Shown: one piece after another, positions 8,785-19,906 of the stretch
How positions within the stretch are numbered: position 1 is the first letter of the stretch
How the letters are laid out: every line of letters begins with the position of its first letter
Source: Macrostomum lignano
Lineage: Eukaryota
Reading direction: 5' to 3'
Length of the DNA stretch: 64,000 nucleotides
Assembly: GCA_002269645.1 (NCBI GenBank)
Contig: NIVC01001482.1
Span: 62,001 to 126,000, forward strand
Translations under genes and position numbers: made by a program
The notes under the pieces: model-generated
What the model was told of the DNA's origin: nothing
What the model saw: only the letters and a program-made list of their open reading frames with translations
Database searches by the model: none

Positions 8785-9746
8785 ATGTGGCTCTTTCTGT
8801 TGCTGTCTCTCGGCGTCTGCTGCTCAACAGTCGCGACCGCCTCCATGTCGAGCAAAAGTTCTTTCTCCAAGCTGGACATCTGTCCGGCGACTGACAAACT
8901 GGCGGAACTCGCCAAGCTGCAGGGCGCTCAGGATCCGAGGACCTGCTTCGTTGAGTGCGCCATCGAACCCACCTGCTTCGTGCTGTACCGCTCTGGCGGC
9001 ACCTGCTACTTCGGCACCGCTGAGCAGCGGGACAGCCTCTTTACTCTGACCGTGTCGCCGAACTCCGATCCATGCGAGAGCTTCGCTAAGAGCGTCCAGT
9101 CCAAGCTGGTGGTGCTGTTCGACTTCCGGCAGGGTCAGTCCGAACCAACCTGGTCAGTCCGGGCACCTTCGACGCCGCACCCCACGGAGGCGTCACCAGG
9201 GACAGCCTGGGCGCCCACTTTGCCGGAACGGCTGCCGACTACATCGAAGTGGACACGCGCAGCGGATCCCTGGCTGCTGACTACCTGGACCATCCCAACA
9301 ACTTTACCTTCTACGCCATGGTAGTCAGAGAGACATACTACCAAGCCTCTTACCACTGCTTCTACGATTGCGTGAACGCAGCTTCATCGAAAATGGCGTA
9401 CTTCGGCGATCGCGGGGAGAAGGCCTGGGTTCAGCACCAGTTCCTGAGCGCGGGCACCGCCGAGACTCGACAGTCGGCCAAAATTGCCACAGGCAGCGCG
9501 CCTCTGGCCATCTCTCTCGGAGCTGTTTTCAACGGCAAGACGCTGAGCCATTTCCATTTCAACGGCACGTACCTGGCGACTGAAGATGCCATGAATTGGG
9601 GAACCTACGATACGCCTAAGTGCCTGCGACTCGGCTTCAACAAGGATGCGAGCGCCGGCCTCAAGGGCCGCATCATCTGCTACGCCATCGCCAAGGCTGC
9701 CCTGAGCACCGCTGAGTTGAAGCAGCTGGAGCAGATCTGCTCCTAG
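8785..9746 (+). pseudogene. PAN/Apple + ConA/LamG-like paralog 1, frameshifted (pseudogene or assembly error)
   Basis: ATG at 8785 (MWLFLLLSLGVCC, signal peptide) and a PAN Cys pattern. After FDFRQG the paralog-matching frame (NLVSPGTFDAAPHGG..YIEVDT..QLEQICS*) is shifted by a net +5 nt at 9136-9146. Confidence 0.8.
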
Positions 9747-10248
9747 AAGGTGGTTTTTAAATGTCTAAGAAAAGCCAGAAAAGAAAATTGAAACTTAATT
9801 CATTTTGCAGCTATCGAAGAACTTTTATTTAAAAAATATACGAGTAAAACACCGCAATAGCGTCACTTTTGCAACAAACAAAATTTTTCTTTTAAAGCTA
9901 CTTTTTGAGTAGTATGATGCGATTTTTTCGGATCCAGAAAGAATGAAGTTGATTGAAACAATTTTTTAAAACTTGAGTTAATCTGTGATAAAAAATCTGA
10001 AACTAGCTCGTAACTATTTAAATTTTTCGCCTTTTTGACTAAAACTATATTGTGTACTTTTTTATCGCTCCTGAAAAACAATATACTGGTACTTCGTACC
10101 AACAATTGCAATGTACGACTCGTACTTACGCTCGTATGTGCAATAAACACTGGTTCAAATTTTAAGAACTTCTTGTTAGAACAATGTTTATCAACTGTCA
10201 TCCGAATGGCCTTTTTAATTTATGTGGATTTGAAAAAAGAACTAACTT

Positions 10249-10624
10249 GTTAACTAATTAACCAACTAACTAACTAACTAACTAACTGACTAACTAACTA
10301 ACTAACTAACTAACTAACTAACTAACTAACTAACTAACTAACTGACTAACTAACTGACTAACTAACTAACTAACTAACTGACTAACTAACTAACTAACTA
10401 ACTAACTAACTAACTAACTAACAAACTGACTAACTGACTAACTGACTAACTAACTAACTAACTAACTAACTAACTAACTAACTAACTAACTAACTAACTA
10501 ACTAACTAACTAACTAACTAACTAACTAACTAACTAACTAACTAACTAACTGACTAACTAACTAACTAACTAACTAACTAAGTAACTAACTAACTAACTT
10601 ACTAACTAACTAACTAACTAACTA
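10249..10624. repeat. (TAAC)n microsatellite
   Basis: Direct reading, with scattered TGAC variants. Confidence 0.95.
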
Positions 10625-16569: not shown

Positions 16570-17063
16570 CCCTACCAACCCGCCCTGCGCAGGGCCCTGC
16601 TTGGACTCAATCGCAGGGACATCAGGGCGGTGACCATGGCCCTCTCGGGTCATGGCTGTTTTGCCAGGCATCGCCACCTCCAGGAGAAAATCCGCAGTGA
16701 GGCATGCCCCTTCTGCCTCTCCGGTGTTGAGAATGCGGAGCACATCATCTGTGAATGCCCCGCCTTTACTCAGGACAGGCTCTCCTACCTCGGCCCAAAC
16801 CCGGACCTCACCGACGTTTTCAGGCCCGAGAATCTCTGCCAGCTCGTCCGCTACCTAAGGGCTACCGGGCGAGCGACAATCCACCTCATGGACACTCCGG
16901 AGGGGGACCGCACTGCGGACACCGGCACCACCGGAACTCCCTGCGCGACACCGCAGCACTAGCTGCCCGTGGTCGCCAGGGGTTAGCGAAATGGGCGGCA
17001 ACGCCTCCTCGCTGTTTCGGGACGCACGGAGCCCCCTGCAGCTGAGTCAAGTAAGTCAAGTCC
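16570..17063 (+). mobile_element. 5'-truncated non-LTR retrotransposon, ORF2 C-terminus (R1/LOA/I-group-like)
   Basis: LLGLNRRDIRAVTMALSGHG followed by a C-x2-C-x8-H-x4-C knuckle (CPFC..EHIICEC), then a 3' UTR and an AGTCA-repeat tail. Confidence 0.8.
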
Positions 17064-18901
17064 CTGCCGACACCAATATCGAGTACTAAAAGAAGTACTA
17101 CATGGTTTTTCGAGAAAATTATTGAACTTGTTATTTAATCAAAGCTTGTAAAATATCGAGAAGGAAGGCGAAGTGAGCGCCTGCGTTTCCTAGCTCTCAG
17201 CTACTCAAAAAGTTCTTGGCTTGGCAGAAGTTCCGTCAAGATTTTGCGTAAATTCGGCATTCAATGATTGTGTAAGAAAGGAAATTTCTCTCCTTTCTAT
17301 TGATGGAAGGATTTGCCTTCATCATTTAGTCAGCGATGCACCCCTCTCTAGTCGTTGTCAACAAGATTCACTTTTATGCTCACTTTTTGGCTCCTGCACT
17401 TGTATCGAATTTTTTAACCCAAACGTTGGATAATATTATAATAAAATTCCTACGAGCTTATATTTCTACTCATAGTAGCTGACCCTTTACAGATGCGCTA
17501 TTTTTCATTATAAGACCTATTCGGCCTTGATGCGAGTTTGCGTACAGCTCCTCATAAAAGTATTCTCAAGTCATTCTCCCACCAACTCCAAATGAATCAA
17601 CCAGTGCTCCAATGTCTACAGGGTGCAATATAGGCGTGTACTTTTAACGAGGCTGATGGACAGCCGAACAGGGAGGAGGGAGGTAAGTAGCGCAGTGGTA
17701 ATGCGGCTGAATCTCTGGATGCGTGTCTACCCGACATGTAGGTAGAATAAACTCTTCCGTTTATAACCTTGACGTTGCTTGAAGCCTCTAAAGGATTCCG
17801 TGAGGCTGTTCAACAATGGGCGGGTGCGACTGCTAGCTTGAGAATGAAGCTTGTTGAGCGACGCAAAGTGTTCTTACATGTAGACTCAGTCAGTTGAGCC
17901 TGCCTATGGCGCCATCGGTGCCGGGGCCCCAGATCCCTTACTCTTAGTCTTGAGGTAGTCGCAGGCTTTGCTTCTTACCTGGCAACAATGCTCAGTCTTT
18001 AAGTAGAAGTTTCTATGGAAACTCATCGATTTTCTGGTCAAGCCATCGCCTACCTACGAGATCGGCTCAGTGGGTTATGGAAGGGGCTTCAATGCCTTCT
18101 GTTAGCACCAGGATGGTAGGTGAGAGAAAGCTATTATGCTAGCAAGTTTGGCAAGTCGCGTCGAGTGCAGCTGAAGGGAAAAAACTGTTTAAGCTCAGCT
18201 ACTCGGTGCGAAGTGCGAAGTAATCGGTTGAATAGGCAAGCGCGTTAAGAGGGTTAACCTGGCATGACATCTTGACGGTTTTTTCTCTAAGCAGGCATTT
18301 ACATGTCCTTGGTTCGTAAAAAAGTGGAGTGGAAGTGCCCAACTTACTCACCATTCTCCAAGGACCACTTCGAAGCGCTACCGAAAACAACGGCTATTTC
18401 ATAGTAGCTCGTAGACGAATATTTCAGCCATTCAAATAATTTCAAATTCATTTCGAATCATTTTAAGTCATACCAACAAGACGTGTCAAACCTGCTTGTC
18501 CCAATGTCTCCCAACGGAATCAATTGTTGACAGGCGCATGTCTCATTGGTGTCTTAGAATTTGTACAGACATAGTATTTAAGCTTCCCTATTTCAAAAGG
18601 TACATAGTTCATTACAAAGCAGGCTTAAAACATTCTTCTCCTAGTAGCTAGTCTCTGCCTGATAGCAGAAACCAGAAAGCAAGTTGTGTAGCTATAGAAA
18701 CGCCCACAACAACAAAACTCCGCTGGATTGTACAAACCGAGTCGCTTTGCCACAAAGAACGATAAGCCAAAGACAGCCTCGTTCCTGATTGGTCCGTCCC
18801 AAGGCCCTCTGGAATTCTATTTAGCCCTGGCGAGGCGCGGGAACTACGGACACAGAAGTCCAACTCTGCGAGCGCCTTTCAACAAACCAGCCAGTCGCGA
18901 T

Positions 18902-19906
18902 ATGCAAGCCCGAGCCGCTCCCATGCCGCTGCTGCTGCTGTGGCTTTGTACCGCCAGCGGGGAGGCCAGAACTCGAATCGTGGAGCAGAACGTCACCTTC
19001 GACAAGCGGACGGTGTGCCCCAGCAATGCAAGCCTCGCTCAGCTAAGCTGGTTGTCTGGCGCACAAGACGCTGGCGCCTGCTTGTCGGCCTGCGCAGCCA
19101 ATGCCAGCTGCTCGGTGCTGCACCGCTCCAACGGAGTCTGCTACCTTGGCGACTCCAACCAGCTGGCCGGCCTCTTCAACCGGTCCGAGGCTCAGAGCGC
19201 CGATCCATGCGTGAGTCACGTGAGGCGGGACGTGAAGTCCAAGCTGGTCGTGCTGTTCGACTTCAGGCGGGGCTTCGCCAACCTCGTCAGTCCGGGTAGC
19301 TTCGACGCGACGCCTCACGGAGATGTCGTCCACGACGCTGACGGGGCCCACCTGTTTGGCTCTAGGAATGATTACATCGAGGTGGACACCCGCGGCGGCA
19401 CCTTGATCTCGTCTTTTCTCGAGACACCTGCGAATTTCTCATTTTATGCAAAAGTATTCAGACGACTGACTGCTACCGATCTGTGGTTCAGTCACTACGG
19501 GAAAAACTATCATCACTTTTATAACTGCCAATGGGGATATGAAGCTGGAGCTCTAGGCGAAAGAAACGGTTTTCCCATGGTTCGGCATCGGTTTATAGCC
19601 AACAGTTTCAAGCAGTGGGGTCGGGCGGACATCGAACCAGCCCCTCTGGCCAACAACTCTCCGATGCAGTTCTCGGTTGGCGTTGTGTTCAACGGAAACT
19701 CCCTGAACAACTTTTACTTTAACGGGTCTTCGATGCGCGTCCGGGCGAGCAACGCCTTCGGGATGTACAGCTCACCCGGCTGCCTCAGGCTGGGCTACCA
19801 CTCTGACAGTAGGTTTCGGCTGAAAGGCCGCCTGATCTGCTACGCCATCGCCAAGACTGCGCTAAGCACGGTTGAGTTCCAGCAGCTGGACCAGCTCTGC
19901 GGGTAG
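18902..19906 (+). CDS. Secreted PAN/Apple + ConA/LamG-like protein, paralog 4 (diverged, intronless)
   Basis: ATG at 18902 (MQARAAPMPLLLLWLC, signal peptide); same Cys pattern and C-terminal LKGRLICYAIAKTALST..QLDQLCG*; several NxS/T sequons. Confidence 0.85.
   Translation: MQARAAPMPLLLLWLCTASGEARTRIVEQNVTFDKRTVCPSNASLAQLSWLSGAQDAGACLSACAANASCSVLHRSNGVCYLGDSNQLAGLFNRSEAQSADPCVSHVRRDVKSKLVVLFDFRRGFANLVSPGSFDATPHGDVVHDADGAHLFGSRNDYIEVDTRGGTLISSFLETPANFSFYAKVFRRLTATDLWFSHYGKNYHHFYNCQWGYEAGALGERNGFPMVRHRFIANSFKQWGRADIEPAPLANNSPMQFSVGVVFNGNSLNNFYFNGSSMRVRASNAFGMYSSPGCLRLGYHSDSRFRLKGRLICYAIAKTALSTVEFQQLDQLCG

Follow-up and report, generated by a model that had tools for sequence, protein, structure and literature searches.

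A tandem cluster of four intronless genes for predicted secreted PAN and ConA-like proteins in the flatworm Macrostomum lignano

Four co-oriented paralogues at one locus

We analyzed a stretch of 64,000 nucleotides (nt) from the genome of Macrostomum lignano (assembly Mlig_3_7, NCBI GenBank GCA_002269645.1, contig NIVC01001482.1, positions 62,001 to 126,000 of the forward strand), referred to below as the window, with all coordinates counted from its first nucleotide. It contains a cluster of four related open reading frames (ORFs), termed P1 to P4, that are predicted to encode secreted proteins with an N-terminal PAN/Apple module and a C-terminal ConA-like domain. An ORF listing of the window placed all four on the plus strand, co-oriented and each open from the signal peptide to the C-terminus (in P1 across two reading frames). 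The main features of the cluster are as follows.

P1, 8785-9746, plus strand: frameshifted member; signal peptide and PAN module in frame 1 (8785-9135), ConA-like domain in another frame (9144-9746, the frame of ORF 9249-9746)
P1 frameshift site, 9134-9162, plus strand: complex indel, net +5 nt; direct duplicate of GGTCAGTCCG at 9134-9143 and 9153-9162
P2, 11281-12270, plus strand: intact, 329 amino acids (aa); predicted signal peptide at ~aa 1-22
P2 predicted PAN/Apple part, ~aa 27-106 (11359-11598), plus strand
P2 predicted ConA-like/Laminin_G_3-type domain plus C-terminal helix, ~aa 110-329 (11608-12267), plus strand
P3, 15213-16196, plus strand: intact, 327 aa; 96% identical to P2
P4, 18902 (ATG) to 19906, plus strand: intact, 334 aa; most diverged member, 48% identical to P2; seven N-x-S/T sites

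A tblastn search with 16 family members as queries put the copy number in the window at exactly four. A conserved C-terminal motif (...EFxxLExLC) closes every uninterrupted ORF, and a TATAAA sequence lies 53 nt 5' of the P2 ATG. The intronless state of the cluster is unusual for M. lignano, since the genes of this species average ~5 introns (PMC5730564). The GC content at third codon positions (GC3) of the family genes is 0.72-0.80, compared with 0.76-0.82 for the flanking LRR, TTL, and p24 genes (described in the last section), a similarity that speaks against contamination and against recent horizontal transfer; by this measure, P1 to P4 appear to be native genes. A preliminary description of this DNA, made from the sequence alone, had proposed four co-oriented single-exon genes of ~330 aa sharing a signal peptide and a six-Cys module. 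The ORF listing bears out the gene structure, and both shared elements are present, namely an N-terminal hydrophobic segment and, in P2, the residues C35, C56, C60, C66, C76, and C99.

Each protein begins with a hydrophobic leader and contains no later hydrophobic span. In addition, N-x-S/T sequons are conserved, including one in a near-invariant FYFNGS motif. We predict from these features that the proteins are secreted, and they are putatively glycosylated.

A predicted PAN/Apple module at the N-terminus

Single-sequence Pfam searches returned sub-threshold matches only, to PAN_1, PAN_3, KIAA0319_N, and Laminin_G_3. Across the 16-sequence family alignment (A3), PAN_1 was matched in 13 of the 16 members, with a best E value of 1.2e-4. 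Moreover, a profile restricted to the N-terminal module (alignment A6, 17 sequences) matched solved PAN/apple domains at E values of 1.2e-6 to 3e-4, among them the PAN modules of a fungal oxidase (6ryx; 1.2e-6), apple 4 of factor XI (8e-6), and an apple domain of MIC4 (7e-5). Five Cys residues of the module (C10, C31, C35, C41, and C51, module numbering) are invariant in the 17 sequences and a sixth is present in most. Their positions agree with the conserved PAN/Apple framework of two core disulfides plus an outer pair, the connectivity being predicted from that correspondence. In an AlphaFold2 (AF2) model of the protein, the PAN part shows strands at residues 28-32, 34-36, 45-48, 68-72, 75-79, and 88-90 and helices at 38-43, 53-62, and 81-87, with a predicted local distance difference test score (pLDDT) of 86-91. 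Profile and framework together identify the N-terminal part as a predicted PAN/Apple module, as the preliminary description had proposed.

With the known PAN/Apple proteins (factor XI, prekallikrein, the N domain of HGF/plasminogen, MIC4, and fungal copper-radical oxidases) the family shares a module of ~80 aa with four core Cys and an outer pair, a predicted helix-on-sheet pattern of secondary structure, and a predicted extracellular setting. The family differs from them in that its single PAN module precedes a ConA-like domain and is joined to no kringle, protease, ZP, or additional apple repeats, and in that its individual sequences lie below the Pfam threshold.

Two small M. lignano proteins encoded outside the window (P0010 and P0011) carry the same PAN subtype joined to a different Cys-rich C-terminus, and one member of their cluster has been named automatically as CBM_19-containing. 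This arrangement suggests that the PAN module has been shuffled within M. lignano.

A predicted ConA-like sandwich at the C-terminus

The AF2 model built with alignment A3 reached a pLDDT of 79.2 and a predicted template modelling score (pTM) of 0.68, compared with a pLDDT of only 38.6 when a 4-sequence alignment was used. A Foldseek search of the PDB with this model yielded 195 matches at E ≤ 1e-3, and those at the top of the ranking (E values of 4e-7 to 8e-6, probability 1.0, ~240 aligned columns, 10-15% identity) are without exception Laminin_G_3-type ConA-like jelly-rolls. They include the lectin-like N-terminal subdomain of clostridial neurotoxin binding domains, the lectin-like domain of trypanosome trans-sialidase, and the LamG-like module of PAPP-A; their template modelling scores of 0.40-0.50 are normalised to the whole two-domain query. 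At the level of sequence, Laminin_G_3 was matched in 4 of the 16 family members of A3 (best E value, 4.2e-6), a weak precomputed match to it exists for one relative (P0007), and the family profile gave marginal PDB matches for this domain (E values of 0.02-0.05). The domain also opens with a motif (hhhhFxFRxGxxN...G.xF.G...Y) that is typical of Laminin_G_3. The model and these matches indicate that the C-terminal ~220 residues are predicted to form a ConA-like/LamG-type beta-sandwich at the superfamily level, closest to Laminin_G_3.

The fold returned by AlphaFold and Foldseek thus agrees with the LamG half of the earlier proposal of a LamG/pentraxin fold (Foldseek E value of ~4e-7). The pentraxin half did not hold up: none of the 16 members matched Pentaxin (PF00354) at E ≤ 1, and no pentraxin is present among the top 50 structural matches, so we rejected a pentraxin identity. 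What the family shares with pentraxins is the broad ConA-like beta-sandwich superfamily fold and a secreted nature; what it lacks is the profile match and the place of any pentraxin among those 50 structures.

Compared with Laminin_G_3 and other ConA-like proteins, the family has the predicted jelly-roll and the domain-start motif in common, and it differs in a C-terminal helix of its own with a conserved Cys pair and in the marginal significance of the sequence match. Two Cys residues, one in the last strand and one at the C-terminus (C307 and C327 in P2), are conserved almost throughout the family, and a C307-C327 disulfide probably pins the helix to the last strand. The catalytic, translocation, and beta-trefoil receptor-binding parts of the structural matches are absent from the family. 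A clostridial-neurotoxin-type binding domain was considered and rejected, because only the jelly-roll half aligns, at 10-15% identity, and a protein of 330 aa leaves no space for beta-trefoil, translocation, and protease domains. The resemblance to toxins and enzymes is therefore one of generic fold only and implies no kinship with either.

Divergence, constraint, and gene conversion

The four genes differ widely in their divergence. P2 and P3 are 95.7% identical in DNA across 1054 bp (self-blastn, E = 0) and 96% identical in protein, P1 is 68-69% identical in DNA to P2 and P3 across ~900 bp (E = 4e-97 for P1/P2), and the matches of P4 are weaker. Protein identity is 60% between P1 and P2 (with the two P1 frames joined) and 45-48% between P4 and the others (48% for P4-P2). 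These values accord with the preliminary description, which had put P2 and P3 at ~95% identity and P1 and P4 at far greater distances.

Synonymous divergence (dS, Nei-Gojobori) amounts to 0.075 for P2-P3, 0.82-0.88 for P1 versus P2 or P3, and ~1.4 (saturated) for P4 versus the others. The ratio of nonsynonymous to synonymous divergence (dN/dS) lies at 0.32-0.39 in all six pairs (0.33 for P2-P3 and 0.39 for P1-P2), which indicates purifying selection that is relaxed relative to typical conserved genes. P2, P3, and P4 retain every family-invariant Cys, N, and G position. We take P2 to P4 to be under moderate constraint, as estimated from these ratios, which give no demonstration of diversifying selection, and P1 appears to have been under constraint through most of its history.

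The homology between P2 and P3 has narrow limits, as listed here.

P2 side of the homology tract, 11249-12302, plus strand: coding sequence (CDS) and 32 bp on each side, with an abrupt end beyond
P3 side of the homology tract, 15181-16228, plus strand: CDS and 32 bp on each side

A word-size-7 blastn comparison of all intergenic segments found no further homology among them. The tract ends (11249/12302) lack a poly(A), a target-site duplication, and terminal repeats, inverted ones included; retroposition and a mobile cassette were rejected as sources of the P2/P3 pair on these grounds. Since a dS of 0.075 predicts alignable flanks, yet the homology ends 32 bp outside the CDS, gene conversion between older tandem paralogues best explains the similarity of P2 and P3. 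The alternative is that the two are products of a very recent duplication, as under pure birth-and-death evolution. Their low dS and their adjacent, co-oriented position would suit such an origin, but a young segmental copy should have kept flanks of ~92% identity rather than losing homology 32 bp outside the ATG and the stop codon, the marks of retroposition or a mobile cassette are not found, and conversion can be seen at work elsewhere in the array. We therefore regard a recent duplication as rather unlikely.

That second instance of conversion is a P1/P2 mosaic. Among the residues that are identical between P1 and P2, the codon is also identical at 43 of 50 in the PAN part and at 81 of 130 in the LamG part (Fisher p = 0.002), and the P1-P2 dS is 0.36 for PAN versus 1.18 for LamG. 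In comparisons with P4, codon identity does not differ in this way between the two parts, so the mosaic is not a general codon constraint.

Variation is concentrated in two segments. Residues 197-250 are hypervariable and contain indels, with a dN/dS of around 1 in P1-P4, and the loop at residues 294-299 holds 5 of the 14 amino-acid substitutions between P2 and P3. This distribution is suggestive of variable binding loops.

The four-gene DNA alignment, the raw sequence, and translation frame by frame locate the P1 lesion directly 3' of a conserved FDFRQG motif. There, the CTTC of the paralogues is replaced in P1 by the nine bases TCAGTCCGA (~9135-9143), which lengthens the gene by a net 5 nt and puts its two halves in different frames, as the preliminary description had noticed. 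One result of the indel is a second copy of GGTCAGTCCG in P1, which repeats the downstream one. The frame after the lesion runs for 200 codons without a stop, so the lesion is recent or possibly reflects an error of assembly; P1 is a probable recent pseudogene. A tiny intron that would rescue P1 is implausible, given that the sole frame-restoring GT...AG pair (9138-9157) spans 20 nt and would remove the family-invariant Asn of the GxxN motif.

In the scenario that we propose, the array would have been born by tandem duplication and then partly homogenised by gene conversion, which would have covered the complete CDS in the P2/P3 pair and, between P1 and P2/P3, the part coding for PAN, with pseudogenisation (P1) accounting for the loss of a member. 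The cluster would thus evolve by duplication, gene conversion, and pseudogenisation together. Gene conversion in the array means that apparent ages are blurred and are partly artefacts. A birth-and-death family, as first proposed, is supported by paralogues of graded divergence (dS of 0.075, 0.8, and 1.4) and by one pseudogene, but the independence of the copies is broken by the limits of the P2/P3 tract and by the P1/P2 mosaic.

Relatives, distribution, and annotation

An exhaustive hmmsearch with a 4-sequence profile against 1.84 billion cluster representatives found 17 proteins, nine of them at E ≤ 1e-10. Every match with a named source is from M. lignano; two more carry UniParc or MetaClust identifiers only, and three (P0014, P0016, and P0017) are short intron-free environmental contigs. 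The same search gave no prokaryotic sequence at E ≤ 1e-3. Within a collection of 15 billion proteins, none was >50% identical to P2, P3, or P4. A word-indexed protein search returned one match for P2 (P0001, 42% identity), one for the 16-sequence alignment, and zero for P4, and there was no match in a PDB sequence search with P2 alone, in NCBIfam, or in an Rfam search of the window. A scan of metagenome DNA with alignment A1 produced 334 pattern matches, 0 of which were confirmed. The family seems, from these searches, to be confined to the Macrostomum lineage.

Clear family matches outside M. lignano entries occur only on short metagenome contigs, namely L007 (ENA ERZ23496033 scaffold_308363) and L008 (JGI 3300040801 Ga0450804_4101313), both with uninterrupted ORFs. 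Their source organisms may be other small flatworms.

The paralogues elsewhere in M. lignano (PAA58135.1 / A0A267E973, PAA50913.1 / A0A267DNP4, A0A1I8H603, A0A1I8GWZ0, and UPI0007A151EB) share with the window proteins the architecture, the invariant residues, and the EFxxLExLC end. They are likewise intronless or nearly so (P0007 is a single exon, and P0002 is one ORF save for a short 5' piece), and tandem pairs occur among them too, an older fused gene model (P0008) holding two copies. They differ in being only 21-43% identical to the window proteins, and the three loci fetched are single-copy within 10 kb on each side. The other family loci fetched from the same assembly are the following.

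P0002: contig NIVC01002407.1
P0021: contig NIVC01000292.1
P0007: two contigs

A conserved gene neighbourhood was rejected, as other members adjoin unrelated genes (PDZ, amino-acid permease, and UQ_con) and have no LRR neighbour. The paralogues bear automatic names only ("Apple domain-containing," "Lectin_legB domain-containing," and "Fibrinogen C-terminal domain-containing"), and our literature searches found no paper on the family. The preliminary description had not recognised a named family here, and rightly so: the relatives are uncharacterised M. lignano entries, and the cluster does not belong to a well-annotated, conserved, low-copy gene set.

Between positions 10702 and 32213 of the window, the sole gene called in GenBank is the LRR gene, so that P2, P3, and P4 are without annotation. 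Exact look-up, which included the assemblies of public sequencing runs, found no record identical to the P2-P4 products. The GenBank annotation is derived from transcripts, and transcripts that overlap repeat annotations were removed from it (PMC5730564); absence from it is for that reason weak evidence against expression.

Interpretation of the cluster and rival explanations

PAN/Apple modules are known to bind proteins or carbohydrates, and the sandwiches of the ConA-like/LamG fold to bind ligands; from these roles we infer an extracellular binding function for the family. We consider it probable that the cluster comprises four tandem paralogues, three of them intact and one recently frameshifted, of a Macrostomum-restricted family whose intronless genes encode secreted PAN plus ConA-like proteins acting as putative binders. 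By analogy, the proteins would be released to the extracellular space and act there as binding proteins or adaptors with two heads, one being the PAN module, which might hold a protein or glycan partner, and the other the lectin-fold domain, whose variable loops would take up a second ligand, probably a glycan.

Several points weigh against this interpretation. Taken singly, the window proteins score 11.6-13.4 bits against Pfam PAN_1 (PF00024; cut-off, 21.4) and 12.8-16.2 bits against Laminin_G_3 (PF13385; cut-off, 27.6). The whole-model Foldseek ranking is dominated by the larger C-terminal domain, and the PAN fold has no domain-only structure match. No ligand-binding residues are assigned, glycan or Ca2+ binding is only putative, and ConA-like folds occur in non-lectin proteins too. 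P2 to P4 are absent from the transcript-based annotation (weak evidence against expression, as noted above), the assemblies of public runs contain no product identical to theirs, and an assembly error could be the source of the P1 frameshift.

One rival explanation is that the array consists of decaying, unexpressed relics, that is, a pseudogene cluster with no current function. The frameshift in P1, the missing annotation of P2-P4, and the lack of an identical product in public assemblies would all fit, but the three other ORFs of 327-334 codons are intact, dN/dS stays at 0.32-0.39 in every pair and at 0.33 in the young P2/P3 pair, none of the family-invariant Cys, N, and G positions is lost, and codon usage is host-like. 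In addition, the removal of repeat-overlapping transcripts by the annotation pipeline would affect 96%-identical duplicates (PMC5730564). We consider such decay improbable. Acquisition of the genes from bacteria, or as cargo of a mobile element, is more improbable still. It could account for the lack of introns against a genome average of ~5 per gene (PMC5730564), and Laminin_G_3-type domains are common in bacteria, with bacterial proteins among the best structural matches. However, the exhaustive search retrieved no prokaryotic sequence at its threshold, GC3 is the same as in neighbouring host genes, the signal peptides are of eukaryotic type and accompanied by N-glycosylation sequons, terminal repeats and a transposase are not found, and the adjoining LRR gene is intronless as well.

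A more specific assignment than that of putative secreted binders would make the family immune pattern-recognition lectins or fast-evolving reproductive proteins (of seminal fluid or egg coat). Secretion, two binding modules, lineage restriction, and multiple copies are in keeping with it, as are a dN/dS of 0.33-0.39 that is high relative to housekeeping genes, the 5 of 14 P2/P3 substitutions in the loop at residues 294-299, and the hypervariable residues 197-250. Fast evolution of Macrostomum reproduction-related genes has also been reported (PMC7336406, PMC8662610). On the other hand, the identifiers of the annotated paralogues are absent from the supplementary tables of a seminal-fluid screen and of two Macrostomum expression studies, and we hold this assignment to be possible yet doubtful. 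The data favour none of secretion or mucus, matrix or eggshell, reproduction, and defence or microbe recognition as the role of the family. An even bolder idea, which we regard as speculative and unlikely, is that these are Macrostomum-specific two-headed recognition proteins whose lectin-fold loops, diversified and shuffled by conversion, tune them to partner or microbe glycans in post-mating processes, egg/sperm recognition, or mucosal defence. If true, a transgenic hermaphroditic flatworm model would offer a recognition system that is both new and genetically tractable.

What is new here is a set of unannotated genes (P2 to P4) and a defined domain architecture for a family known only from automatically named M. 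lignano entries. By analogy, the family would be of a kind already known, that of modular secreted binding proteins, and the cluster neither reveals a new mechanism nor settles an open question. It does offer a compact case of gene conversion alongside pseudogenisation in a neopolyploid genome. It is usually from lineage-restricted secreted families that species-specific biology, such as secretions, adhesion, reproduction, and defence, is built. Since M. lignano is amenable to RNA interference, in situ hybridisation, and transgenesis, the function of the family is quickly testable.

Surroundings of the cluster

The other genes identified in the window are the following.

LRR gene, 20702-22213, plus strand: intronless, 503 aa; Pfam LRR_8 E value 3.7e-17; signal peptide, LRRCT-like Cys motif, C-terminal hydrophobic tail
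TTL-family (TTLL-like) gene, 32612-33304 and 38751-39314, plus strand: at least two exons, with a 5.4-kb minisatellite-filled intron between them; TTL E value 1.8e-41
emp24/GOLD (p24) exon, 56390-56887, minus strand: E value 3e-25

The leucine-rich repeat (LRR) gene immediately adjoins the cluster downstream and is co-oriented with the four genes; the hydrophobic tail of its predicted product may be a glycosylphosphatidylinositol or membrane anchor. This product matches exactly that of a gene annotated on NIVC01001482.1, and 7.5 kb of that contig agree fully (100% identity) with positions 17702-25213 of the window. Intron-rich Ig and TTLL11 genes had initially been named as neighbours. The TTL-family gene is indeed multi-exon, but the Ig signature D.G.Y.C is absent from every frame of the window, and the immediate neighbour is the intronless LRR gene.

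Two repeat-like features lie between the family genes. A dispersed 362-bp repeat is located between P2 and P3 (12687-13046), with an inverted copy of 98.6% identity on the minus strand just 3' of the LRR gene (22654-23015) and a third of 91% at 62265-62630; it is probably a young element resembling a short interspersed nuclear element or a miniature inverted-repeat transposable element. Between P3 and P4 (16630-17045, plus strand), there are ORFs with a CxxC...ExxH...CxC motif that recalls the C-terminus of ORF2 of retrotransposons lacking long terminal repeats, with no Pfam match.

Approximately one third of the window consists of tandem arrays with periods of 4-171 nt (1-8361, 24628-30233, 33311-37235, 39388-49181, 51656-53967, and 58591-58904), and the region upstream of the cluster (1-8400) is made up almost entirely of minisatellite arrays. 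Tandem repeats account for 15% of the M. lignano genome (PMC5730564), and such an abundance of minisatellites is therefore normal for this species. Among the arrays are a 2.8-kb (CTCTCTC)n tract with an extreme strand skew (34421-37235) and a 3-kb array of a 39-mer (40453-43479). Finally, an ORF of 616 aa on the plus strand (43572-45422) holds an in-frame 21-nt minisatellite (44365-44943, 27.6 copies, encoding DWLQIPT). The flanks of this ORF are non-repetitive, its N-terminal part has no Pfam match, and the minisatellite may be coding or may belong to an intron that is read through.

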